From Lepidodermella squamata (taxonomy: Eukaryota > Animalia > Gastrotricha), in assembly GCA_047495785.1 (NCBI GenBank), contig JBLDXI010000074.1:1426001-1490000 (forward strand): a stretch of 64,000 nucleotides of DNA, read 5' to 3'. Both the position numbers and the translations under genes were made by a program. Position 1 is the first letter of the stretch. Each line of letters opens with the position of its first letter. A model generated the notes under the pieces. It ran no database searches. It had not been told where the DNA came from and was given only the letters and a program-made list of their open reading frames with translations. Shown here in pieces: positions 3,149 through 64,000 of this stretch.

Positions 3149-6100
3149 CTTTCAGTAGTTTCTAAACATTTCTAGGCAGCGACGTAGAACTGTCTTTGAA
3201 AACTTTGAGATAGGAATGCCAGCTTTCGCCCGAGTATGCGGGATTTTGGTGAGACATCACGATCGCTTAGCTGACTAAGCGTTTTACTCTGAATTTCACG
3301 CGTTATAGAAGCCCAACCGGCATCTAGCTTCAGCATCCGCTCGCTAGAAGCAACTGATTCCCAGAAAGATGTGGATAACTACGCGCGCCACGCTCAACTA
3401 TGTAGTGTGATCGTGACATTCTCGAGTTTCGCACGTGTCGGAAACGTAATGTGGGAGTTGTTAGCGATGAAATAGTTAACGCAGCAATTAAATAATGCTC
3501 AATCCCCATAATAGCAACTATGCGCGAAGTTATTCGCCAATCGATAACAATCGGTATGGGTATAAATAAAAATAAATTTGACTTGGACAGCAAATTGAGC
3601 ACAAGAAGAACAACCAGTAACACCCATTGGAACTATTAGCTTTAGAGTTCAAAAAATCTAAGCATAATCTTGGTTCATTCTAGGATATTAGATTGCCCTG
3701 AAACGCATTCTCAAAGGCTCGATTCCAAGCTTTGTGGAAACTCGCTCTGGAATTGTTTCGAGTGGTTCAATAATCTTGAAAGTATTGATAGTGTTTTGAT
3801 AGCGATACATCAAAATGCATCGTACACTTAATTTTCCAATGAAGCGTGAATTTCGGACTTTAGCGAGAGCTGAAACAGATCATTGGGCATAATTCAATTT
3901 CTACTAAAATAGAAATGGATAAATGGGGCCTTGTTTAACTGCTACCTACTTGGGATATAGAATAACCTTTTTCACAGCTGCTAATCGCCCTTTTTGAACA
4001 CTGTCTCTGGGTAACGCCCCAGATTTCCATAAATTTGGGCAATTCAATTAACAAATTGCACAAATGAGGGCTATGAATCTATCAAAACAGTGTCTTTTTT
4101 GTGAAGTAGAAAATTCTGGCGAAAACGTAAAGTTTTGACACAAATATCGAAAATCACGGGGTTTATAAGCCGTGATGATCTCGGCGAAAGGTCAAGAAGA
4201 ACAGGCGTGCTTCGTTGAATTTTAAAAGATATAACGCAGAGTGGTAATAACAAACTACGCACGAGTGAAACGATTTTCCGCGAAACACTCAACGCGCGCG
4301 CACGTCAAATTTCTGACGCACTATATCTATACAAGAAAAAATGCTATTAAAATGAAATCCAAAATAAAACCGAAAAGACGACTTGATTTTTGGTCCGAAA
4401 ATCGTAGATTCACGCAAGCACTATCTTTTGTCATCAAAAATGCGGTTGAATGGCTATATCGAAACTAGCGAAGAACTTATAGCCCGTGGAAAAGACAAAA
4501 ATTGACTCGGTGCTGAATGTGTCCTTAGAAATAGGGATAGTTAGGGACACTGCTGGGCCGTGTAAAAGCCGGACTTGGGCCTACTGTGTCGTGTGAAATG
4601 TGAGACTGATGCTCGCCATCGAGCGGGCAGACATTGTTGACAGTGAGCGATGTAGCGAGAAAAGCGCATAGCTGGTGCGTTAATCAAATTTAGGCGAAAC
4701 GCACCGAGCAGCAGCAGCAGCAGCATCGCCGACAGGTATCACCTTTCGATCGATGGCAAGCAATAATTACGCAGCGAGTAGCAACCGCCGACGACGATTG
4801 AAAAAAAAACACGTGTCTAACTAATCTGGCGAGAGCGCGCAGCCTGGAGATTACTCAGGTGTATCTTCATCATCATCAGCATCATCATCTTTGACAGGCT
4901 GCGAGCGAGCGAGCGAACGAGGGGGTGGGCGAAAAAACTAATGCGTATTCACACGCGCGCGTTCGAATGTGCGCGGTTATTTTCGGACTCGCGCAGCGAA
5001 TTAGGTAAAAGTGGAAAATTGATAATAATGCTATAATGCGGCGATAAGCGCGGTTTTCCGCGGCTTGTAAGCGGTGAATTCGCGGAAAAACTCCGCATGT
5101 ACGCCATTTGTGACACCGAGCGATAACCTAGATAGCAATAATTGCGGTTATTTACAATGTTACCAAGTAAATGGTCAACAAATAGTTAAGCCGTCAAATT
5201 ACAAGCCGTTTAATGTCAAAACTGCATGGCTGCTTATCCGCCCAACCTGATGCCTTGACAGGAGATTCTTATCATTTTTTGGCGCGGCAATTGTTATTCG
5301 GAGGTTCTCTTGCCTGAGGCAGCACCAATCTTGTCGAAAAATAATCGCGGATTTCTGGTATAATCGAAAGACCACAGACGTGGCTCGGTAAAGTTTCAGC
5401 ACTTAGTCTCGAGCAAGATTTCAAGATTTCAGGGTGCACGGTCTTGAAGAGATTAAAACTGTTCGGAATATTTTTTACCGGAAACAAATCTACGGTGAGC
5501 GGAACCTAATTTGCTGTAGCGAAACCAAGTTTACATTTTGCTAAACCAAACTCGAATATGCCAAGATTCCTGTTTTGAATAATTCTACGAATTTTAGGCG
5601 AAGCATGAGTTCTGAATTGAATTGCGTCTTATAGAGAATAACACGCTGAATTTACTGGTGATTTTTGTAGAATAATTGTGCTCAATCTTGGCCCGCGAAA
5701 AATATGCAAAAGGTTATTTCAGGCTATCAGACCCGAAACTATTTTTACAGCTATTTTATGATAGTTGAAGGCAAGGAAAAGGCTTTGTTCTTTCTTATAC
5801 GTTTTCCATAAGTAAGAGATAAGACTAGTCATTGTACATTTTTCAACGTGGCTTTGAGCCATCAAGATTCAAAATAGCCACCAATAATCGACTAACATGA
5901 AATGGTTACTGTGATATTATGTATAATATCGCTTTCTCGACATTCGAAGAAGTGAGTCACAAGTGACGAAGAAGCTATATGGATGCAATGGCACCGTGAA
6001 AATAGTATCTAGCAACTCGGCCCAGCCCACTTTTCCGGTAAAGATATGAATGCCGGGAGAAAAATTATCTCCGTAACGCGGTATTTTTTCTTGGTATATA

Positions 6101-48200: not shown

Positions 48201-51200
48201 AGTTGTTATTAAAATTCGATTACATAGTTGGAAAGCCGAAAGGAAGTGATGAGCTGGCTTCAGAACATTCATTTATAGAAGAGCCGCATGTGACGATGGG
48301 CCCAGTCGTGTATCTTCCACAAACGCTTCCCCAGCGTCTCCCTCCGCCCCCATCAGGAAATTCTCAACTGACCAGCCCAGACTCAACCAGCCATATATAT
48401 CACCCGCCCGGTTCAAGAAATGTGACGGTAGCGAAACCCGGGAAACTTCACGGCCGTAGCTTCATCAGCGATGCGACGACGTCCGAGGTGTCTACTAAGC
48501 GCTCCACAAAGCCGTCAAGGCGCGGCGTCAGCGACAAGTACGATTCGGATGACGAGTCAATAGAGAGCGAGGGCCATTTTTCAAAATCGACCACCAAGCA
48601 GAGCACGATACAGACGAAGAAATCGACTGTCAGCAAATCTGTCGTGCGGCGCAGTGAAGCGTGGAATGAGATGGCAGACTCCGAGGATGACGGCGATGTG
48701 GAGGAGGATGAGTTGCTCAAGTCGCAGGCAACTTCAAAGAAGACGGAAAAACCGACCCCTGCGCCATCTACCGTGTCTACACAGCCGGCAAAGTCTTCCG
48801 TGGTTTCTCAGCCGACCCCTGTTCGAGCTGTGGCGCCACCTCGACCAGCTGCAGCTCCGATCCCGGCAGGAGCAGCTCCCAGACCCGTTGCACCCGGAAC
48901 CCAGGTGGGTCCCAGACCGGTTGCGCCAGTAGCTGTTCAGCCAAGACCAGCAGCCCCGGCACCCGCACCCGCACCCGCACCCACACCCGCCCCAGCTCCA
49001 GCCCCAGCTCCGGCGCCTCAGCCAAGACCGCCTGCTCCATCTGTGCAGCCGGCCCATGCACCCCAGCCAGGTATAATTTGTCACCACTTTCGGTTTTGAT
49101 ACTTGGGGCAATTGAATAATTTGGTGAGCTAATATTTCCGATTCATATCTCAAGCAACGGCTCAAAAACCCAGCGAGCCCAAGCCAGTTGTTCCCGTGGT
49201 GCAACCACCTAAACCCAAGGGTATTTATTCGAAATACTCTAGAAGGAATTTTCTTATATCGTGAACTCTTTCCTCATTAATTAATTAATTCGAACCTATC
49301 AATTTCTGCCTTCTCATTCTCTTGTACGGTTAAATTCCTTACCCAAACACATTATCATTTATTCTTCTGTCTTCTGGCGCCAATACAATTTCAACTTCCA
49401 AGCGTTTTCGCAATCTTAACATAGCTCACCAACCTTCGTACGGTTGGCTTGATTCAGTTATATGATCAAACGAGATGTCGCTTTTAGAGCCAGAACCTAC
49501 CCCGAGGCCTGCTGCGCCAGAACAGACTAAGCCAGCAGCACCAGTGAAAGCACCGCCTTCTCAACGAGAAAATCCGCCTAAATCGCCTCCTCCAGCAGCT
49601 TTACCACCCAGTAACATAAAATCAATCGGTAATTTGATCCAGACCACCTATCCTTTGATACTATCGTCTTATTTCACTCCTCTCTATTTCGATTATGCAA
49701 ACAATAAGTCTCTGATTCAACTTTATTGCTGTGAATTGTTTTTACTTACAGCTCAAGCCCCAGCGCCTAAACCAGGTTGTTGCTTCTTTCTATGCTGTGG
49801 TGGCGAACTGCCCATTTACTATTAAGATGTTAAGCGTTTTAGCGAATTTTATTTACTTCGAATTAACCATCCGCTGATGGATTGCTGCCTTGTGACTTGA
49901 AAATAACCTAGTATTACCTAAAACCTCCGTTACCTCGAAATTAAATGTGGTGAACCTACTTAATTGCGCTCATAGCTCCGGAATCAATCGCAATTGATGT
50001 CGAGCGTGAACTCTGGCCTGCTACAGCTAAAGCCATTGAGCGAAGACCGGAAACCCCGAAAATTAAGCCATTGCCTCCTCGAGAAAAGACTGCCGAGAAA
50101 ACAAAAGAGCGCGCAATACAGGCAGGGGCAAAACCAGTTGAAGAGGCGAAGAAGCCAGAGGTGAACCCACGAATCTCAGCCGAGAAAACGAACGATGAGC
50201 CTTTTAAGTCCGTAAACACTTCGTATCTGAAACCATCAAATCACATCGAGAAGACTAGAGAGCCACAACCTATTCTTGCTAGAGATAAGACGAGAACACT
50301 TGAGCCAAAGCAAGAGCAGAAATCAAATCCTTCGTCAGATGAATCTTTTCAAGTGCAAAAAGCAACCGGTATTTTCTAAAGAGCGTGCGCTGAATCCTTC
50401 GCGTGCAATTCGATAATCTGCAACTGCTTAAAAATCATTTTGCTGTCTTCGATATCTCTGATATATCAGATTCTTTTGAATCAAAAAACACTTTGCTTAC
50501 AATTCAATTTGATGGCTATCTTTTAATTTTTCAATCCCCAATTTTCGGATCTTATCAATGAGTCTGAGGAATTTTATTTGTCTTCTTCCTGTTGAACTAG
50601 TAACCAGTGTCCAGCTCTTAATCGTTCTTACTTGCTCACTTTCAGCCCCAGCTCCGCCAGCGCAGCCAGTTCAAGCACCGAAACCAGGTAAATCTCAGAT
50701 CAAGAAAACAAACGTCGTGTTTTTGCCCACGGAGTGCCAGTTTGTTGATATTGTCTGTCATTGTCTTTTTACCTTTGTCTTGTTTGAGTTGATTATTCAT
50801 ATATTTCTTATAAAATGTTGCAAACTTTCGATTATTTGTGTTACTTTTCCCTCAGCTCCTGCGCCAGTTCCGGCTCCAGTTCCGGCCCCTTCTACGCAGG
50901 CCCCTAAACCGGCTCCAACACCTCAGCCTGCCCCAACACCTGCTCCAGCTGCGAAACCTATGCCGGCCCCAGCGCCCCAGCCTGCCCCTCAACCGAAACC
51001 GCAACCTGCTCCGGTCGCAGCAACTCCGGCACCGGCACCAGCACCGGCCCCAAAACCACTACCGCCTGCCCAGCCGACGCCACCGATCGCGGCACCACCG
51101 CAAGCTCAACCTGCAAAGCCCGCTGAGCAAAAGCAGGCGGAGAAGCCAAAGGAACCCGAAAAGCCGAAAGAACCGGAGAAACCGAAGGAACCTGAAAAAC

Positions 51201-52681
51201 CAAAGGAACCAGAAAAACCGAAAGAACCAGAAAAACCGAAAGAACCAGAAAAACCGAAGGAACCTGCGAAACCGAAGGAGCCTGAGAAGCCAAAGGAACC
51301 CGAAAAACCTAAAGAGCCTGAAAAACCTGAGAAGCCGAAAGATCATCCGCCACCACCGGCGAAGGAACCTACGAAACCTCCTGCCGAAGCGAAGCCAAAA
51401 GATGCAGAACCACCGAAACCACTTGAGCAAAAACCAGTTGAGAAGCCAAAAGAACCCGAGAAACCGAAGGACCCACCGCCTCCTCCTGCAAAGGAACCGA
51501 CCAAGGCCCCGGAACCGAAAAAGGAAGAGCAGCCTAAACAAGATCTCAAACCAGCACCAGCGCCTGCTCAGAAGCCTCCCGAGCCCCCTAAGGAGCAGGA
51601 AAAACCCACAAACGCAACAGTTATCCCCGCCAAAGTCTTCAATCCAAAGTCTGACGCCGAGCTGCTCAATAAAGCAATGAAGGGCGGCGGTACAGATGAA
51701 GAAGCGTTGATCACAGTGCTAACAAAGCGCAGTTACCCCCAAAGGGTCGAGATTGCGAAGAATTACAAAGATATCTACAAAAAGGAACTGGTCGCCGAGC
51801 TAGAAGAGGAGACAGATGGTAACTTTTTCAACGTTCTGTCTAGCTTGCTGCGGAGTCCAGCTGAGTTAGGTGCTTACAACTTGAAAAACTCTCTGGAGAA
51901 TGACGGGGACGACGAGGATGGTCTTGTTGAGTTTATTTGCACGTCAAACCATGAAAATCTCCAGCAAATAAAGGCTAAATACCAAGAAAGTGAGTTTAAG
52001 CATAATTTTGTAACATTCCTGAATTACCGTACTGTAAATATAGTGTTCAGCATCGCTCTGGAGAAAGACCTTGCCAAAACCGGTGGCAACGCAGTAATTC
52101 GCAAACTTATGATCGCAATGCTTGCCCGACCAAAGGCGCCCGAAAAAGTAGACGAAGCAGCGGCGCGGGCTGATGCTGCTAAATTGGATGTCGAATTGAA
52201 AACAAAAGATGGCGAGAAAAGTGTGGCAGCTTTCAGTGACCTGCTGTCAACTCGCTCTAGGTCACAGCTGCGAGCCATCTTCAACTACTACGAAGAGGCA
52301 CAGAAGAAGTCCTTGGAGCAGGCGTTGACCGAAGAGTACAAGGGCGACGCTCTGAAAGCTTTTCTAGCAGTCGGTATGCCGCTTTATTGGAATTATTTAG
52401 TCACGTTTAATTATGGAATCTTTTTTGATCTAGTGACCGCAATTCGAACGCCGACCATGTACTTCGCTCAGCGCTTGAACGCAGCTATGAATGGGTTCGG
52501 GCCGAAAAACCCTGCCCTCATCCGAATAATTGTCTCTCGTTGCGAGTTCGACCTCGGTCTAGTCAAGGCTGACTATGAGAAAATCTACAAGAAGGCCCTG
52601 CAGAAGGACATCGAGGAGGAAACGTTCGGCGACTACGAAACTGCTTTGACATCGCTCATCAACGGCAATCTGAAACAATAA
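45291..52681 (+). CDS. Gene A: RP1-like DCX-PLAT-PLAT-beta-trefoil protein fused via a Pro/Lys/Glu spacer to one annexin core (~1885 aa). Exons 45291..46700, 46755..46937, 46993..47125, 47188..47196, 47307..47508, 47571..47702, 47752..47823, 47876..48171, 48228..49070, 49155..49220, 49488..49628, 49752..49775, 49976..50368, 50646..50687, 50856..51989, 52044..52373, 52434..52681
   Basis: DCX: AYFYREGDQRF...SLVKDLNERISLRNGVRSIF..PEGRHRITSLDEI..GHYICS. PLAT x2: WTVRVATG...DWYCENV...FPFVCKNWF and YEVTVHTGDVWNAAT...GWYLDSIAV...FPAWRWL. Trefoil motif FESIIFPGHFL. Annexin: DAELLNKAMKGGGTDE...RIIVSRCEFDL...GDYETAL. All junctions are GT-AG and in frame (5658 nt). Individual spacer exons are less certain than the domains. 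Confidence 0.82.
47188..47196 (+). other. 9-nt microexon of gene A (ATCACACGA)
   Basis: ttttcttgcgatcag|ATCACACGA|gtaagt. Inclusion makes the alignment to gene B gap-free (ARGETPERL-DHTS-IF versus ARAEPVDKK-EGFA-VF). Confidence 0.75.
51140..51340 (+). repeat. Coding 18-nt tandem repeat, (EKPKEP)x10 plus partial units
   Basis: Peptide units nearly identical while third codon positions vary between units. Confidence 0.95.
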
Positions 52682-56000: not shown

Positions 56001-59000
56001 GGAAATGGCGACAAATTCTGTAAGCTCAAAGATAATAAATAGTAAAAGCTGAATGTATTTATTTATTTATTTGATTTAAGGTGAATTCCGAGTCAGAAGA
56101 TTCCGAGAGCAGAACTTCGTGACGCTCGAGAGCATTCGTGATAGGGGCTTTTTGACCTTTGCCCCAAATGGCCAGATTCAAGTTCTCGAGCATCAACCAG
56201 CAACAGGGGCTCCATCTTCCAGGCTATACCCTGAAGTCGTATCATGTGCGTTTGTCCGAGCTCGAAAGTGTTTATCGATTGATCTATTCTTTTACTTCAA
56301 ACAGTTGGTCGGAGAAAAGAAGGCAGCAAGCCACCATCTGAAATCACTGAAATTAAGAAGAAAATCGACGATCCTGATTCCGACCTCAATTCCGAGGTTG
56401 ATGACCTGTATCGGGATCGATATCGCGGGAAACCGAAACCAGCGCGAAAATCCAACGATCCTCCGCCTGTGCGGAAAGTAAAGAAAGAAGAGCGGGCCCC
56501 ATCGCCTGGTCGGAGGGCTCCACCGAAAGGGCTGAGGCCGACCTTGACACCGGCTGCCCCATTCCACGCCAAGGACGATGCTCAGCTCATTCGCAAGATC
56601 ATCTCTCGCAACGAGTTCGATCCAATCCTGAAAATTGTCTGCCGTCGAACAGCCGACCAGCGAACTGCCGTTGCCAAGACCTATAAAGACCTATTCAAGA
56701 AGGAAGTTGTTCAAGATATCGAGACTGTTTCCCAGGGTGAGCTCAGCGAGTTAGTGTCGGATCTTTTCCTGCCATATATTACCTTCGTGGCGGAGGATGT
56801 GCACAAGGCCCTTCAAGGTAACGTGGACGAAATAGCTATGATCGAAATGCTGTGCTCGAATACAGATGAGGAGCTCACTCAAATCAAGCAAGAGTATCAA
56901 AAACGTGAGCTCTTTAAAATCACAATTAGTCTTGAAATAAGTAAACTTCCAATTCTGTTTAAGGATTCGGTCAAGCCCTGGATTCAAGTATCATGCGATC
57001 GATGACAAGCGGCTTTGCTCAACGACTTTTCGTTAGATTGCTGTCAAGACCATCATCCCATGACTCAGTCGTGAAAGCAGCCATGGAAAATGACGCAAAG
57101 ATGTTGAATCAAGAATTCGGAGAACGCGTCGATCGTCCCGAGGACCATTTTCTGTTCACGTTGCTGGCTGGTCGCAGCCACACCGAGCTGCGAACAATAT
57201 GCGATAGCTACGTCCAACTTTACAAGACGGAGGTCGATCAAGAATGTTTGAAGAAAATCCCTGGCGAGAACGGGAAGTACTACGCCACTGCCATCTCTTG
57301 CATAACCAAGACTCAGAGCTATTTTGCACAGCGGTTGAACGAAATTCTTACAACCGGCCCCATAGATGCGCTAGATCGCGTCATCTTATCTCGCTGTGAA
57401 GTTGATACGGAGAATATCAAAGCAGAATACGAGAGGCTGTTCAACGCGTCACTGACAAAGAAAATGGCGGCGAAGATCAAAGGCAGTCATCTGACAGCAA
57501 TGTTGACTTTGCTGAAAGAACCGGTGCCAGATTCGGGCGAACAGTCGCCACCCTCGACAAGGCGAGATCCCAAAAACCCAGTTAAACCCAAATCAAATGA
57601 TCAGAGCAGCGAATTGGCCCCAACTGTTTTTCCAGAGAAGAATTTCATCGCAAAACAGGATTGTGAAGTCATACAAAAAGCTTTGAAGTCGAAAAATCCA
57701 GAAGAAATAGCTGCTATTCTGACCTCGATTCTAACTCGAAGGTCTTGGCAGCAACGGCAGGATATCGGCAGAGTTTACAAAGATGCGAACAAGCATGACT
57801 TGGAAGGAGATATCGAAGCTGCGGTCGAGGGATTTTTCTGTAAGTTGATGGTGCGGCTCCTGAAGACGCCGGCTGAAGCTATGGCTCGCGACCTTAACGC
57901 TGCGATCAAAGCGAGTGATGAAAGCTGCATCATGGAAATAATCTGCACTGCCTCGCACAATGACCTCCAAGCAATCAAAGACAAGTATCAAAAGCGTAAG
58001 TCCCATATTATTTATTCCTAACGCTTCTTTTTATATGATTTATGATTTGTACACTAATATTTCAATTTTCAATTTTCATAAAGTTTTCAGCAAGCCATTA
58101 CACAAAGACATTGAGGAAGAGAGTGGAGCTTTCCGAAAGTTCATGGTCGGTCTTCTTGGCCGCTCCAAGGCACCCAGTGACTCCACTATTAACCAAGACA
58201 TGTTCGATGCTGATGCTAAAATGCTGCATGACGAGATCAAGAACAACGGCACTGACAACCTTATTAAATTTTTCACTTCGAACCGCGGGCCAAGCCAACT
58301 CAGCTCAATCTACTTGACCTACAAACAGGAGTTCAAAGCTGAGGTCGAAGAGGATTTGAAGAAGCACATGAACAGCGACGTCGGAAATGCATTTCGAACG
58401 TGCGTTGAGTCTAGCAAGAACAAAACTGTCTACTTTGCGAAACGACTGAGAGCTTACTTGGATGGCAAGGGCAACCAGAACGCCGGCGTTGGTCGCCTCG
58501 TTGCCTCTAGGTGCGAGGTTGATCTCGCAAATATCAAAGCCGAGTACCACAAATTGACCGGCAAAAGCTTGACCCTGAGCGTCGCCAGCCTCGTCACGCC
58601 GAAGGACTACAGTCAAGCTGTTGTTTCTTTGATTGAGGGTAACAAATCAGGGAGTGGACAACTGGCTGGGCCCGCGCCGCCTCCTTATACGCCTACTGTA
58701 TTTGCTGAGCCGAAATTCAACGTAAAGCAGGACTGTGACGCGCTTCAGAAAGCTGTGAAAGGCGCAGTAACGGAACCTTTCATCACCATTCTTACTAGAC
58801 GGTCTTGGCAACAACGTGCTGAAATTGAAAAGACCTACAAGGATGCTAATAAGCGTGAGTTGGAAAAGGATCTGGAGGGCGAGACAAGCGGGAACTTCTT
58901 GAAGGTTTTGTTGAAACTTCTGAAAAAACCTTACGAAAGTTCGGCTCGGGATTTGAATGTGGCCATTAAGACGAACGACACAGATTGCTTGATCGAGATC

Positions 59001-62000
59001 ATTTGCGCAAGCTCCCACTCCGACCTTCAGTCGATAAAAGAGACCTATAAAGAGCGTAAGCTGAGTTCAAAACTTTCAGCCACCATAACTTATTTCTTTA
59101 CAGTATTCGGCTCAAGTCTTCAAGAAGATGTCGAATCTCTGAGCGACTCGAAGCTTGAAGAGCTGTTAATCGCTTTGATCAATCGCCCAAAATCACCTGA
59201 AACCGTCGATGCATCAAACGCGAAAAACGAAGCTCGGGATATGCATGATGAGATAACAGCCGGTGGGAAAAAGGGCGTTAAGCATGTCAACGAACTGATC
59301 TCCACAAGAGGCCAAGCCCAGCTGAGAGCAGCATTTGATGCCTATCAGAAGGAGTACAGTGTCGACATTGCCGATGACTTCAGGAAGTATTTCGATGGCG
59401 ATATTGAGGGAGCCTACGTTACAGTTGGTAAGTTTTATTCGGCCATGTGTATTATTAATAGAACACTGAAATCCTGCGTTTAAGTCGATGCGATCCGGAG
59501 CAAACCCAGATACTACGCGAAACGATTAAACAGTGCACTTACGGCTAACAGTGGCACTCACCACGGGTCTCTAATTCGGCAAATCGTAGCCCGCTGCGAG
59601 ATTGATTTGGCCAATGTCAAGTATGAATATGAACAGCTATACGGTAAATCTCTTCTGAAGGATGTTGAGTCAAAAACGTCGGGCGATTACCGGAGTGCCC
59701 TGGTTTCTTTAATAAATGGCAACAAAGCTGTCGAAGCTCCTCCTCCCCCGCCTTCTAAGCCCAAACCAGCAGAACCAAAGCGCCCTGAACCGAAGCCTTC
59801 AACTAAGGAGCCCGTTGTCAAAGAGGCGAAAGAATCCAACGTGAAAGCTCCTCCACAGTCGAAAATGAAATTCATCCCCACAGTAGTCGCTGAGCCGAAG
59901 TTCGATGTCAAAAAAGATTGCGAAGTCCTTATGAAGGCAATGAAAGGAATCGGGACCGATGAAGATGCTCTAACATCAATTCTCACCAAGCGATCATCGA
60001 AGCAGCGTCAGGATATTAAGAAGAATTACAAAGAAATTTACGATAGGGTTAGTTTATTTATATATCAACTTAGTATCGAACGATTATTAATGATGCCATG
60101 AAATTGTAAAGGAACTGAAACAGGTAAAATCAGCTCTATCTCTGCCTGTGATTTTCTGAGAGATCTAACATTTCATCTATTTAAGCAGGCTATCGCTTGC
60201 AATATTCTGTATTTATTTTTGAAATATTATGATCTTGTTCTCGCAGGACTTGGCTAAGGAAATCGATTCGGAAAACAACGGCAACTACCTGAAAGTCCTC
60301 ATGGCCCTCTTGTCGACCCCAGCGGGCTACTTGGCTGAATGCCTCAATGCTGCAATGAAAGGAGCTGGAACAGACGAGGACACTCTCATCGACATAATCT
60401 GCACTTCTTCAAACGCAGACCTTCAACTAGTCAAGGAAGCCTATTTGTCCAGTAAGTTTCCTATGACTCTCAGTTTAATGATTATTGAATGGCTGAAATA
60501 TTCTTGGCAGAATTCAAGGCCAAGCTGGAGGATGACATCGTGAGCGATACATCTGGGTCTTTCCAAAATCTGTTGGTTTCCCTGCTAAACCGGCCGAAAT
60601 CGCCGGAGAAAGTTGATCCGAAAACAGCTAAAGGCGATGCCAAAATGCTGCATGATGAAATAATGAAAGGCGGAAGCAAGGCTGAAGTGCAACTCAACAC
60701 CCTGTTCGCAACACGAGGTAAGGCATCAAATTGCATACGTGCTTCCTGATACTCACCCTTTTCATAGGCCAAGCTCAGCTAAGAATGGCGTTTGACTTCT
60801 ACAAAGAAGATTTCAAGTCAGATATCGAGGATGATATCAAGAAACACTTTGATGGCGACATTGAAGCTGCCTACGTCGCTGTCGGTGTGTTTGGTAGCTT
60901 GTTTAGTATATTTATATTAATTGTCCTGACTATCAATTAGTTGGTGCCATCCGTAACAAGCCGCTGTACTTGGCGAGGCAAGTGGACAAATCCATGTCAG
61001 GCGCAGGGACGAGAGACGATGACTTGATCCGCCTGGTCGTTTCCACGTGTGAAATCAACCTCGGCAACATCAAGACCGAGTATGAAAAGCTGAAAAAGCA
61101 ACCCTTGGTTAAGTCTGTTGAAAGCGAAACGAATGGAGACTACCAGAAGGCCTTGGTTTCGTTAATAAATGGAAATTTTGATGCGAAAGCTCCAGCAAAA
61201 GAAGAAAAGCCGAAAGAGGAACCAAAGACGCAAAAGAAAGCCGCTGAACCTGGTAAAACTTTTTCAATCACGATCGTTTCATTTTGTAATGACTCAAATT
61301 TGGGAAATGAATAGCTAAAACAGGAAAAGGTGCTACTACTGCTAAGGCAGGGAAAACAAACGAAAAAGCGGCGGTTTCAAAAAAAGGTGACCCCGAAACC
61401 CGGTGTTAATTTGTGTGTTTTAGAGTAGACGAAAATTAGCTGAAAATTAGCTGCCCATTGTTTTTGGCATGATGAGTTTTTATTATATCTTGAAAGACAA
61501 TTAATCTCGCCTAACCCAATCGCTTCTTTGCTTTCTATTAGAAACCGAGGCGAAAAACATTGCCTCTATTCCAACGGTGGTTGCCGAGCCGAAATTTGAT
61601 GCGAAAAAAGACGCCGAAGTACTGATGAAGGCGATGAAAGGCATCGGCACAGACGAGAAGAGCATCATCGCCGTGCTAACCCGTCGAAACTACGCTCAAC
61701 GGGCCGAAATTGAAAAAGCCTACAAAGCTGAATACAAAAAGGTGAGATGATCAATTTTCGGAATGTGAGATGCTGTTCAAATTCGATTTATTAAGGATCT
61801 TGTTTACGTAAGTTAATGGGTTTTGTAAATCGCCGTCGTATCTGTATCGTATCGTAGCATTATGATGTTTTTTTCATATCTATCATCTATCTGTCGTCTA
61901 TGAAGTCTATTCTATCAATCTGTCTAAATGACCATAATTTTCGAATTTTGATAAATTTCTTCCAGGAATTGAGGTCTGAGTTGGAGAGCGAAAATAGTGG

Positions 62001-64000
62001 TAAGTTCCAGGACACCTTGGATGCGCTCATGACGGCGCCTCTCGAGTTCGCGGCTCAGAGTCTGAAAAAAGCAATTGAGGGAGCTGGAACAGATGAAGAG
62101 GCAATCATTGAGGTGCTATGCTATGCTAATTACGACGACCTTCAACTAATCAAAGCCAAGTACGAAAAGCGTAAGTTGGAGTGGCCGTCGCACATTCATT
62201 TGCATTATTTTTGTTCCTAGTTTACAAGGTTTCACTGCAGAAGGATATCGAGTCGGATACAAGTGGCCATTTTCGAAAACTTCTAGTTGCTCTACTCAAT
62301 CGGCCTAAATCTCCAGAGAATGTTGACGTGAAAGGGGCGAAAACTGATTCGAAAACCCTACATGATGCATTTGCGAAGGGCAGTGATAAAGCTGCCGACG
62401 AGTTGATCAAACTGCTGTCAGGCCGAGGGCGCTCGCAGCTACGGCTCATATTCGACACTTACAAAGCTGATTACAACACTGATGTTGTGGATGACATAAA
62501 GAAAAACTTCGATAGCGACATCGAATCAGCGTTCGTCGCAACTGTCTATTCGATCCGCAACCGTTTCAAGTATTTCGCGAGCCGGTTGAATGCAGCGATG
62601 GCAGGGCTTGGGACTCGAGACCAAGCTCTCATTCGGCTTATTGTCTCGCGCTGCGAAATCGATCTCGGAAATGTGAAGGAAGAGTACGAGAAAATGTACA
62701 AAAAGTCTCTTGTAGCAGCCGTCTCAAGTGAAACTACGGGCGATTACTGCGACTGCTTGGTTTCGCTCATTAACGGTAACGGAAGCGGGAGCCCGCTGCC
62801 AAAAGCTCCTGAACCGAAACCAGTTGAGAAGAAGGCAGAAAAGAAAGAGCCAGAGAAGAAGGAACCAGAGAAGAAAGAACCAGAGAAGCCCGAAAAAGGT
62901 ATTAAAATATAAATGATGCGTATCCATATATAGTCGTATAATGAATCGCTGGGTAATTTTTGAACAGGAAAGAAAGGTAATATCAGCTTTTGCTTTCATC
63001 CAAATTTTTTAAATAGCCGGTTTATTTTATCAAGTAGAGTAGTCTGTAGCCCAATTAAATTCAAATAGCAATGCTCACGCAATTACGATACTATATATTA
63101 TATATTTCTTCAGCAATTGAGGCCTCCTGCGTCGCATCTGTACCGACTGTGGTTGCTGAGCCGAAGTTCGATGCGAAAAAAGATGCTGAGGTGTTGATGA
63201 AGGCCATGAAAGGCATTGGCACGGACGAGAAAAGCATCATCTCGGTTCTCACTCGCCGAACCTATCCGCAAAGAGCTGAGATCGAGAAGAAGTTCAAGGC
63301 GGAATACAAAAAGGTAACTTTAACATTTTTCACTCGCCATGATTACGATATTTAATGGCCTGGCAACATTTTACGAACTTAGAATTTCCTTGAAGTGAGT
63401 CTTGGTGTTGTGTATTTTGACCCCGATTCCTGATTCCCATTGCTCGTGTCATTGCTGTGAGAATCTATTTTAAAATGACGATTCGTTTCAGGAACTTCTT
63501 GCAGATCTAAAGAGTGAAACTGGAGGCGATTTCTTCAATCTTCTCACAGCCCTACTTACTCCACCTATCGAGTTCGCAGCGAAAAGTTTAAAGAAAGCGA
63601 TTCAAGGCGCTGGAACCGATGAGGAAACTCTAATCGAGGTGATCTGCTACGCATCATACGACGATCTTCAACTCATCAAGAGTAAATACGAGATGCGTGA
63701 GTTGAAGTTCTACTATATATTACCCCTTCATAATTCCCCCACTATTCGCAGTTTATCGAGTTCCGTTGCAACAAGATGCCGAAAGTGATACTAGTGGTCA
63801 TTTCCGGAAGTTGCTCGTAGCCTTGCTGAATCGGCCTAAATCGCCTGAGAATATTGATGTCAAAGCCGCGAGATCTGATGCGAAAAGCCTTCATGCCAGT
63901 ATAGCTAAAGGTGGCTCAGCAGCTGCCGATGACCTGACAACGGCTCTGTCGATAAAAGGCCGATCTCAGCTGAGGTTGATCTTCGAGAATTACAAGGCTG
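53050..64000 (+). CDS. Gene B: RP1-like DCX-PLAT-PLAT-beta-trefoil protein fused to at least 6 tandem annexin cores, 3'-partial. Exons 53050..53628, 53817..54640, 54697..54776, 54839..55116, 55164..55292, 55341..56019, 56081..56245, 56305..56904, 56964..57995, 58084..59055, 59104..59427, 59485..60047, 60247..60451, 60511..60717, 60768..60884, 60941..61252, 61315..61386, 61542..61741, 61966..62170, 62221..62898, 63114..63313, 63492..63696, 63752..>64000
   Basis: DCX: YPTLDLLMDDLNRRIHLSRGVRAIYTPKGRHAIEDLADIEHGGHYIVS. PLAT x2: YTIRLMSG...DWLCDEI...FPCRRWL and YELTVQTGNLYNAGT...GWYLDHIIV...FPAQRWL. Trefoil motifs VESDKYPGNFI, FESVVFPGSYL, LESIRDRGFL. Annexin cores start near 56540, 57620, 58690, 59875, 61570 and 63140, each opening with a PTL/PTV..F..K.D motif. 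Introns are mostly 47-90 nt GT-AG and preserve frame. Confidence 0.88.
60112..60123 (+). other. Candidate 12-nt microexon (ELKQ), annexin core 4
   Basis: ttgtaaag|GAACTGAAACAG|gtaaaa inside the 199-nt phase-0 intron 60048..60246. Confidence 0.6.
61796..61807 (+). other. Candidate 12-nt microexon (DLVY), annexin core 5
   Basis: tttattaag|GATCTTGTTTAC|gtaagt inside the homologous intron 61742..61965. Confidence 0.65.
62968..62976 (+). other. Candidate 9-nt microexon (adds GKK) in the linker between cores 5 and 6
   Basis: tttttgaacag|GAAAGAAAG|gtaata inside phase-1 intron 62899..63113. Confidence 0.5.
63383..63394 (+). other. Candidate 12-nt microexon (NFLE), annexin core 6
   Basis: ttttacgaacttag|AATTTCCTTGAA|gtgagt inside the homologous intron 63314..63491. 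Confidence 0.65.

Follow-up and report, generated by a model that had tools for sequence, protein, structure and literature searches.

Candidate frame-preserving microexons in the repeat I introns of a gastrotrich poly-annexin gene

In a giant annexin gene made up of many units, three adjacent ones, cores 4, 5 and 6, each carry in repeat I a long intron that encloses a 12-nt block bounded by an acceptor AG and a donor GT. Judged from the sequence, these blocks are almost certainly genuine, selected, frame-preserving microexons. The fuller reading, in which they would also enter the mRNA, probably as regulated cassettes, is the one we lean towards, with moderate confidence. In this model, each long repeat I intron would represent two introns placed around a frame-preserving microexon, of 12 nt here and of 9 or 12 nt in a relative. 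The exon 1 donor would be spliced to the first AG that can serve, at a distance of 54-69 nt that is normal for an intron of this genome, and the near-consensus donor of the microexon (GTAAGT, GTGAGT or GTAAAA) would pair with the exon 2 acceptor. The microexon acceptor would be held weak by its AAG and its few pyrimidines, and inclusion would be regulated, making the block a cassette exon with both forms in frame. Inclusion would lengthen the C-D turn of repeat I by 3-4 helix-compatible residues.

Three long introns in cores 4 to 6

Within the window, by which we mean the whole 64,000-nt stretch of DNA analysed, an intron at the repeat I position is found in cores 4, 5 and 6 only; the cores at 51617, 56703, 57797 and 58692 read uninterrupted across this position in tblastn. 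The three introns span 60048-60246 (199 nt), 61742-61965 (224 nt) and 63314-63491 (178 nt), or three to four times the usual length in a gene whose remaining introns measure 50-62 nt, apart from two introns in linkers (137 and 155 nt). An earlier note on this DNA had singled out the same three cores as the only ones with a repeat I intron, had described these introns as long against the rest, and had placed in each a 12-nt block encoding ELKQ, DLVY or NFLE. Our measurements bear this out, and the coordinates, lengths and peptides of the blocks are exact to the base. The features, in order, are as follows.

59850..60047, + strand: core 4 repeat I exon 1 (3' part), ending ..YDR; donor AGG/GTTAGT; Pfam Annexin E=5e-15, profile 2-44
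60048..60111, + strand: core 4 upstream sub-intron, 64 nt; AAG acceptor preceded at 22 nt by a branch-like TTAAT motif
60112..60123, + strand: core 4 candidate microexon, 12 nt, GAACTGAAACAG = ELKQ; context AAG/../GTAAAA; donor CAG/GTAAAA
60124..60246, + strand: core 4 downstream sub-intron, 123 nt; acceptor CTCGCAG
60247..60451, + strand: core 4 exon 2, starting DLAKEIDSE; repeat I helices D-E and most of repeat II; Pfam and tblastn
61542..61741, + strand: core 5 repeat I exon 1, ending ..YKK; donor AAG/GTGAGA; Pfam
61742..61795, + strand: core 5 upstream sub-intron, 54 nt; AAG acceptor
61796..61807, + strand: core 5 candidate microexon, 12 nt, GATCTTGTTTAC = DLVY; context AAG/../GTAAGT; donor TAC/GTAAGT
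61808..61965, + strand: core 5 downstream sub-intron, 158 nt; acceptor TTCCAG
61966..62170, + strand: core 5 exon 2, starting ELRSELESE; Pfam
63114..63313, + strand: core 6 repeat I exon 1, ending ..YKK; donor AAG/GTAACT; Pfam
63314..63382, + strand: core 6 upstream sub-intron, 69 nt; no AG ahead of the TAG acceptor; TTAAT 28 nt upstream of the acceptor
63383..63394, + strand: core 6 candidate microexon, 12 nt, AATTTCCTTGAA = NFLE; context TAG/../GTGAGT; donor GAA/GTGAGT
63395..63491, + strand: core 6 downstream sub-intron, 97 nt; acceptor GTTTCAG
63492..63696, + strand: core 6 exon 2, starting ELLADLKSE; Pfam
63697-63751, + strand: next intron, after core 6 exon 2; confirmed by an RNA joint

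The exons on either side of the 12-nt blocks are both in phase 0, and seven exon translations qualify as annexin repeats, scoring 52-136 bits each against Pfam Annexin (PF00191; cut-off 25). Exon 1 stops at position 44-45 of this profile and repeat II begins at residue 29 of exon 2. Exon 2 thus has room for the remaining profile positions, and the skipped form can be read as gapless against the profile; these ends agree with the note's statement that skipping leaves an alignment without gaps.

Conservation beyond neutral expectation

Could these blocks be fortuitous AG..GT pairs in AT-rich introns, never used in splicing? A bare AG/12 nt/GT with no further requirement does turn up in 9-18% of shuffled introns, and a thin RNA-like run, X1, gives no RNA support for the blocks among the joints listed. 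With realistic donors, however, the expectation falls sharply: a stop-free AG/12 nt/GTRA block flanked on each side by at least 40 nt is found in 1.4-2.2% of dinucleotide shuffles per intron, giving a joint probability of 5e-6 for all three window introns. The rate in the real sequence of the window is about 2-3% per intron, with AG/12 nt/GTRAR at 2.2e-4 per nt. Neutral sites are also saturated: the proportion of synonymous differences (pS) between cores 4, 5 and 6 is 0.61-0.93, synonymous divergence (dS) is saturated, and a MAFFT alignment of the three introns finds no meaningful similarity beyond the splice signals. The saturated synonymous sites and unalignable introns imply that the shared AG/12 nt/GTRAGT architecture has been maintained and is not a leftover of duplication.

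The expectation of a block was borne out twice in another species. An orthologous poly-annexin lies on marine metagenome contigs L004 and L005, with exon 1 protein about 60-65% identical, and both of its intron-bearing cores hold a block. The L004 intron at 3956-4124 contains AAG/GAGGAAGAG/GTGAGA, 9 nt encoding EEE, 66 nt past the donor, and that at 5444-5626 contains AAG/TCTCTTGAGGAA/GTGAGT, 12 nt encoding SLEE, 63 nt past the donor; in shuffled sequence, a block like these arises at 50-75 nt with a probability of 0.0065 per intron. The 12- and 9-nt blocks differ by an in-frame indel. In a tree built from concatenated exon blocks, the intronless cores that precede these loci in the two species (W_c3+R_0) pair with 94/97 support, so the loci are orthologous by position; c5+c6 is the only other supported pair in a largely unresolved tree. 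Between two strains of the related species, microexon b shows a single internal difference, TCT>TCC, which is synonymous, and the adjoining downstream part of the intron shows about 12 changes and indels. The earlier note would have given up its proposal had inclusion reads and conservation in related species both been lacking; in the one relative found, both L004 introns contain the block.

Three control introns of comparable length, 137-158 nt, contain no AG/1-40 nt/GTRA block. One of them, from L010, belongs to a distant annexin and occupies the same position as the introns of cores 4-6. L010 was itself rejected as a relative, being an unrelated annexin with the intron in place and the block absent, as were L007 and L008 (TARA), unrelated annexins in which the repeat I position has no intron, and L009, an unrelated annexin with its intron at another position. 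A scan of metagenome contigs with exon 1 returned only two ordinary annexins lacking the insert, and core 5 exon 3, as query in a word-index protein search, had no close relative, its best match being 42% identical. Set against the joint probability in the window, the blocks in the second species, the empty controls and the saturated neutral sites, a chance origin is very unlikely.

All five blocks, three in the window and two in the related species, are free of stops and a multiple of three in length, as befits frame-preserving cassette microexons; at 12, 12 and 12 nt in the window and 9 and 12 nt in L004, each between AG and GT, they lie well below 30 nt. Their conservation exceeds neutral expectation across saturated paralogues, in orthologous introns and relative to empty controls, and their peptide sequence is poorly conserved. 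The note's contention that length, phase and position are kept while sequence is not extends to saturated paralogues and to a second species, where the length is 9 or 12 nt.

Splice signals, RNA reads and modes of use

The acceptors of the blocks differ from those of ordinary introns. AAG acceptors occur at four of the five microexons versus none of 14 ordinary introns (Fisher p=0.0013), and pyrimidine content is lower. Weak acceptors of this kind make it probable that inclusion is regulated, and the AAG contrast favours the regulated cassette as far as sequence can speak to it; they could also mean that the block is seldom used. The donors of the five microexons are GTAAAA, GTAAGT, GTGAGT, GTGAGA and GTGAGT, and those of the corresponding exons 1 are GTTAGT, GTGAGA, GTAACT, GTTAGT and GTATAT. 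A TTAAT-type branch motif lies upstream of the microexon acceptor in three of the five introns.

Several properties of these introns would suit a constitutive microexon. In that case the 12 nt would always be spliced in, giving cores 4-6 a C-D turn with a fixed length four residues longer and no switch, and the skipped form would have no counterpart in mRNA. The upstream sub-introns, at 64, 54 and 69 nt in cores 4, 5 and 6, have the usual intron size of the genome (50-62 nt), in each of the five introns no AG located 44 nt or more past the donor comes before the microexon acceptor, and the microexon donors equal or surpass the exon 1 donors in strength. A weak hint in the same direction comes from X1, in which the skip joint is absent among the best-supported joints even though exon 1 of core 6 reaches a depth of 12.6. 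On the other hand, weak AAG acceptors are typical of regulated exons, the skipped form fits the annexin profile without a gap, and the intronless sister cores keep the canonical spacing at the C-D position. We regard constitutive inclusion as a possible but doubtful account.

The RNA run is too thin to reach the relevant junctions. X1, the only RNA-like run found, next to one DNA run, has zero depth over 59988-60563, leaving the core 4 junction uncovered, and among the joints listed for this thin run none spans the core 5 or core 6 microexon junctions. It does contain spliced joints for three other introns of the annexin gene, including 63697-63751. Record 4 of the X1 RNA contigs stops exactly at 63313, the end of core 6 exon 1, which is what a branch in the assembly graph would give and which counts against constitutive use.

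A different role, as an aid to splicing, would have the block act as a strong intronic U1 site and decoy 3' site that assist or compete with the weak exon 1 donor in a long intron; it would set splicing efficiency and rarely or never be kept in mature mRNA. The pairing of weak exon 1 donors with strong internal donors, introns three to four times the usual length, and the barely conserved peptide sequence are consistent with this. Such a role, however, would not require an AG placed exactly 9 or 12 nt ahead of the donor, lengths that are multiples of three in five of five cases or freedom from stops, and the single polymorphism within a block is synonymous. The blocks also begin with GA, AA or TC, so that a block once used could not be removed by recursive splicing. 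Overall, we consider this explanation improbable.

Recursive splice sites and RS-exons, known from the long introns of Drosophila and vertebrates, regenerate a 5' splice site (AG/GTRAGT). The annexin blocks resemble them in that an internal acceptor-donor pair splits an unusually long intron into steps, but the annexin introns reach only about 200 nt. Starting with GAACTG, GATCTT, AATTTC, GAGGAA and TCTCTT, the blocks regenerate no 5' site; they would thus stay in the mRNA, and we rejected recursive splicing on this ground.

The class to which the annexin blocks would add is that of cassette microexons. Frame-preserving cassette microexons of animals measure 27-30 nt or less, and many are neural and depend on SRRM4/eMIC. 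In sequence, the annexin blocks are likewise tiny (9-12 nt), stop-free and a multiple of three, combine a strong donor with a weak acceptor, keep their position across species, and would add a few surface residues while leaving the domain intact. They differ in the introns on either side, which are very short and lack conservation, and in that the same microexon recurs across tandem paralogous domains of one gene. The neural link drawn in the earlier note finds no support: the UGC expected for SRRM4/eMIC falls no more than 30 nt from the acceptor in just two of five cases (18 and 25 nt upstream), is 41 nt away in one and is absent in two, roughly the chance level by our estimate. A literature search on annexin microexons or annexin intron positions found nothing relevant.

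Place in the annexin fold

When a paralogous core lacking the intron is modelled with AlphaFold2, the microexon junction corresponds to residues 56/57, between helix C (40-54) and helix D (58-65). The insert would therefore fall in the three-residue turn that links helix C of repeat I to helix D. The note had put it at the start of helix D, the helix carrying the acidic Ca2+ cap. The junction does lie just before helix D; the cap, however, is the last residue of that helix in the model, 8-9 residues from the insert and at the opposite end. This separation weakens the proposal that the insert tunes Ca2+ or membrane affinity, and the proposal finds no support. The proposed tie to Ca2+-competent cores fares no better, as two intronless cores, at 51680 in the window and at 2945-3319 in L005, possess the canonical GxGT loop and no microexon; the association looks phylogenetic rather than functional.

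The C-D turn of an annexin repeat belongs to the concave face, remote from the side that binds membranes, and this face is usually tied to partner binding rather than to Ca2+ binding. We expect the insert to change the concave surface or the C-D hinge, for instance where linkers or neighbouring cores dock, and do not anticipate a direct change in Ca2+ coordination. Natural annexins tolerate one to two additional residues at the C-D position, and an insert of 3-4 residues there occurs in none of about 200 annexin proteins retrieved.

The nearest parallel within the family, raised in the note, is annexin A6, in which an alternative 6-residue insert (VAAEIL, 18 nt) lies at the start of repeat 7, before helix A. 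Repeat 7 is the third repeat of the second core, and the insert occurs once per gene. Both are short in-frame inserts within an annexin core of a multi-core annexin, alternative splicing having been shown for A6. The gastrotrich blocks differ in sitting in the C-D turn of repeat I, in their 9-12 nt length and in occurring once per core; with the positions unmatched, we set aside an A6-type insert as an assignment and keep it as an analogy.

If inclusion is confirmed, the annexin blocks would exemplify a microexon selected for length, phase and place rather than for sequence, copied along a tandem domain array and retained across species, and the C-D turn of repeat I would be indicated as a regulated annexin site. 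More speculatively, each intron-bearing core may have its own independently regulated 3-4-residue microexon, yielding 2^n combinatorial isoforms that differ from core to core at the C-D hinge on the concave face, a notion we hold only tentatively. Were it true, per-core microexons would form a splice code for the packing of the annexin-core chain, or for partner or membrane binding, conserved between distantly related marine invertebrates. For annotation, an intron three to four times as long as usual can signal a missed microexon where the genome is compact and introns measure about 55 nt, and gene models that skip it may be four residues off per core. Within the inserts themselves, position 2 is usually hydrophobic (ELKQ, DLVY, NFLE and SLEE), with EEE as the exception.

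Probable microexons in the poly-annexin gene

The poly-annexin gene lies on the + strand at 56.5-64 kb of the window, and its annexin cores were mapped by tblastn with the exons of one core as queries:

56703-57550, + strand, annexin core
57797-58655, + strand, annexin core
58692-59723, + strand, annexin core
59874-61176, + strand, annexin core 4
61544-62798, + strand, annexin core 5
63119 to window end, + strand, annexin core 6

A further core found by tblastn (51617-52669) sits within a separate open reading frame, 50558..52681, presumably part of a neighbouring gene. Re-reading of the sequence showed the intron and block coordinates of an earlier note on cores 4-6 to be exact. As that note had said, a phase-0 intron after ..YDR or ..YKK of repeat I is confined to these three cores; the other window cores continue through this position in one frame. 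Each intron contains a candidate microexon:

Core 4, + strand: intron 60048-60246 (199 nt); block 60112-60123, GAACTGAAACAG, ELKQ, between AAG and GTAAAA
Core 5, + strand: intron 61742-61965 (224 nt); block 61796-61807, GATCTTGTTTAC, DLVY, between AAG and GTAAGT
Core 6, + strand: intron 63314-63491 (178 nt); block 63383-63394, AATTTCCTTGAA, NFLE, between TAG and GTGAGT

The gene's other introns measure 50-62 nt, except for two in linkers (137 and 155 nt), and RNA joints in X1, an RNA-like sequencing run, confirm three of these other introns. On the Pfam Annexin profile, exon 1 stops at position 44-45 and repeat II begins at residue 29 of exon 2; since the exon 2 residues before repeat II give enough space for the remaining profile positions, we infer that the skipped form, exon 1 joined to exon 2, would match the profile without gaps. 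A second block of 12 nt between AG and GT directly follows the first in the core 5 intron (61813-61824, TTAATGGGTTTT, LMGF, donor GTAAAT); none of the other introns has an equivalent, and it probably arose by chance.

Chance, shared descent and a related species

A bare AG, 12 nt, GT block is unremarkable alone: each intron yields one in 9-18% of its dinucleotide shuffles. With a GTRA donor, no stop and both flanks of at least 40 nt, the frequency in such shuffles is 1.4-2.2% per intron (joint 5e-6), and in real sequence, across the whole window, AG, 12 nt, GTRAR occurs at 2.2e-4 per nt, or about 2-3% per intron. Because the three introns are paralogous, shared descent also had to be excluded. 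The proportion of synonymous differences (pS) among cores 4-6 is 0.61-0.93, so dS has reached saturation even between cores 5 and 6, the closest two, and alignment of the three introns found no similarity outside the splice signals. This saturation, together with introns that cannot be aligned, argues that the common block architecture predicted for cores 4-6 has been maintained rather than passively inherited.

The animal, whose introns are about 55 nt long, has relatives present in marine metagenomes. No close relative of it turned up in a HMMER search of 1.84 billion representative proteins, which did recover a protein of 40% identity, P0050, on marine metagenome scaffold L003, which ends just ahead of the critical intron. 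With the last open reading frame of L003 as query, a second protein, P0200, led to a longer contig, L004, with near-identical strain copies L005 and L006:

L004 1-6698, ENA metagenome contig ERZ27333047 k141_197411, orthologous poly-annexin of a related marine animal
L005 1-7443, ENA metagenome contig ERZ23486764 scaffold_12399, orthologous poly-annexin of a related marine animal

Two strains of this species are 98.8% identical. By sequence, L004 is the orthologue of the window gene: the core order is the same, the intronless cores preceding the first intron-bearing core group in a tree (94/97 support), and exon 1 proteins are 58-65% identical. In L004, both intron-bearing cores match the window in intron position and phase, and each intron contains the expected block:

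Block a: intron 3956-4124 (169 nt); GAGGAAGAG, 9 nt, EEE, between AAG and GTGAGA, 66 nt past the donor
Block b: intron 5444-5626 (183 nt); TCTCTTGAGGAA, 12 nt, SLEE, between AAG and GTGAGT, 63 nt past the donor

Shuffled introns yield such a 9- or 12-nt block 50-75 nt past the donor with P=0.0065 per intron; the conservation in related species to which the earlier note had looked is found, in a comparison with one related species, in both introns (P=0.0065 each). Each of the five blocks has a length divisible by three and no stop, and the difference between 12 and 9 nt is an in-frame indel. Between the two strains, microexon b differs by a single synonymous change (TCT to TCC); the 108-nt downstream intron part beside it carries about 12 substitutions and indels.

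Three control introns of 137-158 nt contain no block of 1-40 nt between AG and GTRA. One of them belongs to a distant single annexin, L010 (844-1001, Logan SRR15606798), whose 158-nt phase-0 intron falls at the same codon boundary, between ..YKN and ELVDVLKSE. With an intron at this site that lacks the block, the intron position is older than the microexon, and the microexon is lineage-specific. The proposed link between microexon and Ca2+ competence holds within the window in that three of three loop cores and none of three degenerate cores carry the microexon. But cores with a canonical GxGT loop also occur without the intron (window 51680; L005 2945-3319), and the third core past the intron-bearing ones in the related species (L005 7106-7441) is intronless and insert-free with canonical spacing. 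The pattern seems to reflect shared ancestry of one core sub-family rather than a functional rule.

Place of the insert in the annexin fold

The neighbouring gene's intronless core (window 51617-52678) was modelled with AlphaFold2 (mean pLDDT 83.6, 96-97 near the site). Helix C spans residues 40-54 and helix D residues 58-65, with a turn at 55-57 between them, and the exon junction aligns between residues 56 and 57, within the C-D turn. Annexins bind Ca2+ and membranes through their convex face, which is made up of the A-B and D-E loops; the concave face carries the B-C and C-D turns. In the model the acidic cap, which lies 38 residues past the GxGT threonine, is residue 65, the final residue of helix D, and adjoins the D-E loop. 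The insert had been rightly located by helix D; a direct effect on Ca2+ coordination would not be expected, since by the model the insert site and the cap lie at opposite ends of that helix.

Neither Gly nor Pro occurs in the inserts. In the four of 12 nt, position 2 is Leu or Phe and falls in i-4/i-8 register with helix D's hydrophobic positions (ELKQ-DLAKEI, DLVY-ELRSEL, NFLE-ELLADL, SLEE-NLEAEV), a composition and register compatible with one additional helical turn. Other annexins accept +1 to +2 residues at the C-D junction site; none of about 200 retrieved annexin sequences has +3 or +4.

Splice signals and known systems

The first AG at least 44 nt past the exon-1 donor coincides with the microexon acceptor in each of the five introns, and in three of them a TTAAT branch-like motif lies 22-28 nt upstream of this acceptor. 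The upstream intron part, 54-69 nt, has the usual intron size of the gene. The microexons have donors that match the consensus or come close to it; those of exon 1 (GTTAGT, GTGAGA, GTAACT, GTTAGT, GTATAT) are weaker. The acceptor is AAG in 4/5 microexons versus 0/14 ordinary introns (Fisher p=0.0013), and microexon acceptors are also poorer in pyrimidines. A weak 3' site with a strong 5' site, kept over such an evolutionary distance, typically marks a regulated cassette microexon. Because this combination is conserved here, we would rank alternative above constitutive inclusion.

X1, the only RNA-like run and of low depth, gives no coverage of the core 4 junction; among the joints listed, none falls at cores 5 and 6. 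One X1 contig stops exactly at 63313, which, in a thinly sequenced library rich in fold-back chimeras, is a weak hint of a de Bruijn unitig end at a branch point. In window 59700-64000 the run has numerous 'opposite strands' joints spaced by about 100 nt; they resemble the fold-back chimeras of cDNA amplified from tiny samples, and X1 contigs are not a reliable guide to structure.

The blocks are most probably a new instance of the frame-preserving microexon; what is unusual here is that one poly-annexin has them in core after core, an arrangement that would permit combinatorial isoforms. The suggestion that they are neural is not borne out: the UGC signature of neural eMIC-dependent microexons is present in only two of the five, roughly chance by estimate. 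The VAAEIL insert of annexin A6 differs in position and length and is ruled out as the same element; a recursive splice site is likewise ruled out, as no 5' site is regenerated.

Two further observations concern cores 5 and 6. In X2, a DNA run, one contig lies on core 6 (window 63129-64000) with parts also on core 5 (61593-61657 / 62640-62705), with 11-13 mismatches and 'goes back' joints, which suggests more similar cores past the window end or another haplotype arrangement. The P/E/K-rich linker between the two cores holds a candidate 9-nt microexon (62968-62976, GAAAGAAAG) between ..AACAG and GTAATA, phase 1 on both sides, with an intron of 69 nt upstream and 137 nt downstream; the frame is kept with or without it, and in the linker that joins core 4 to core 5 the equivalent place is taken by a 72-nt exon (61315-61386).
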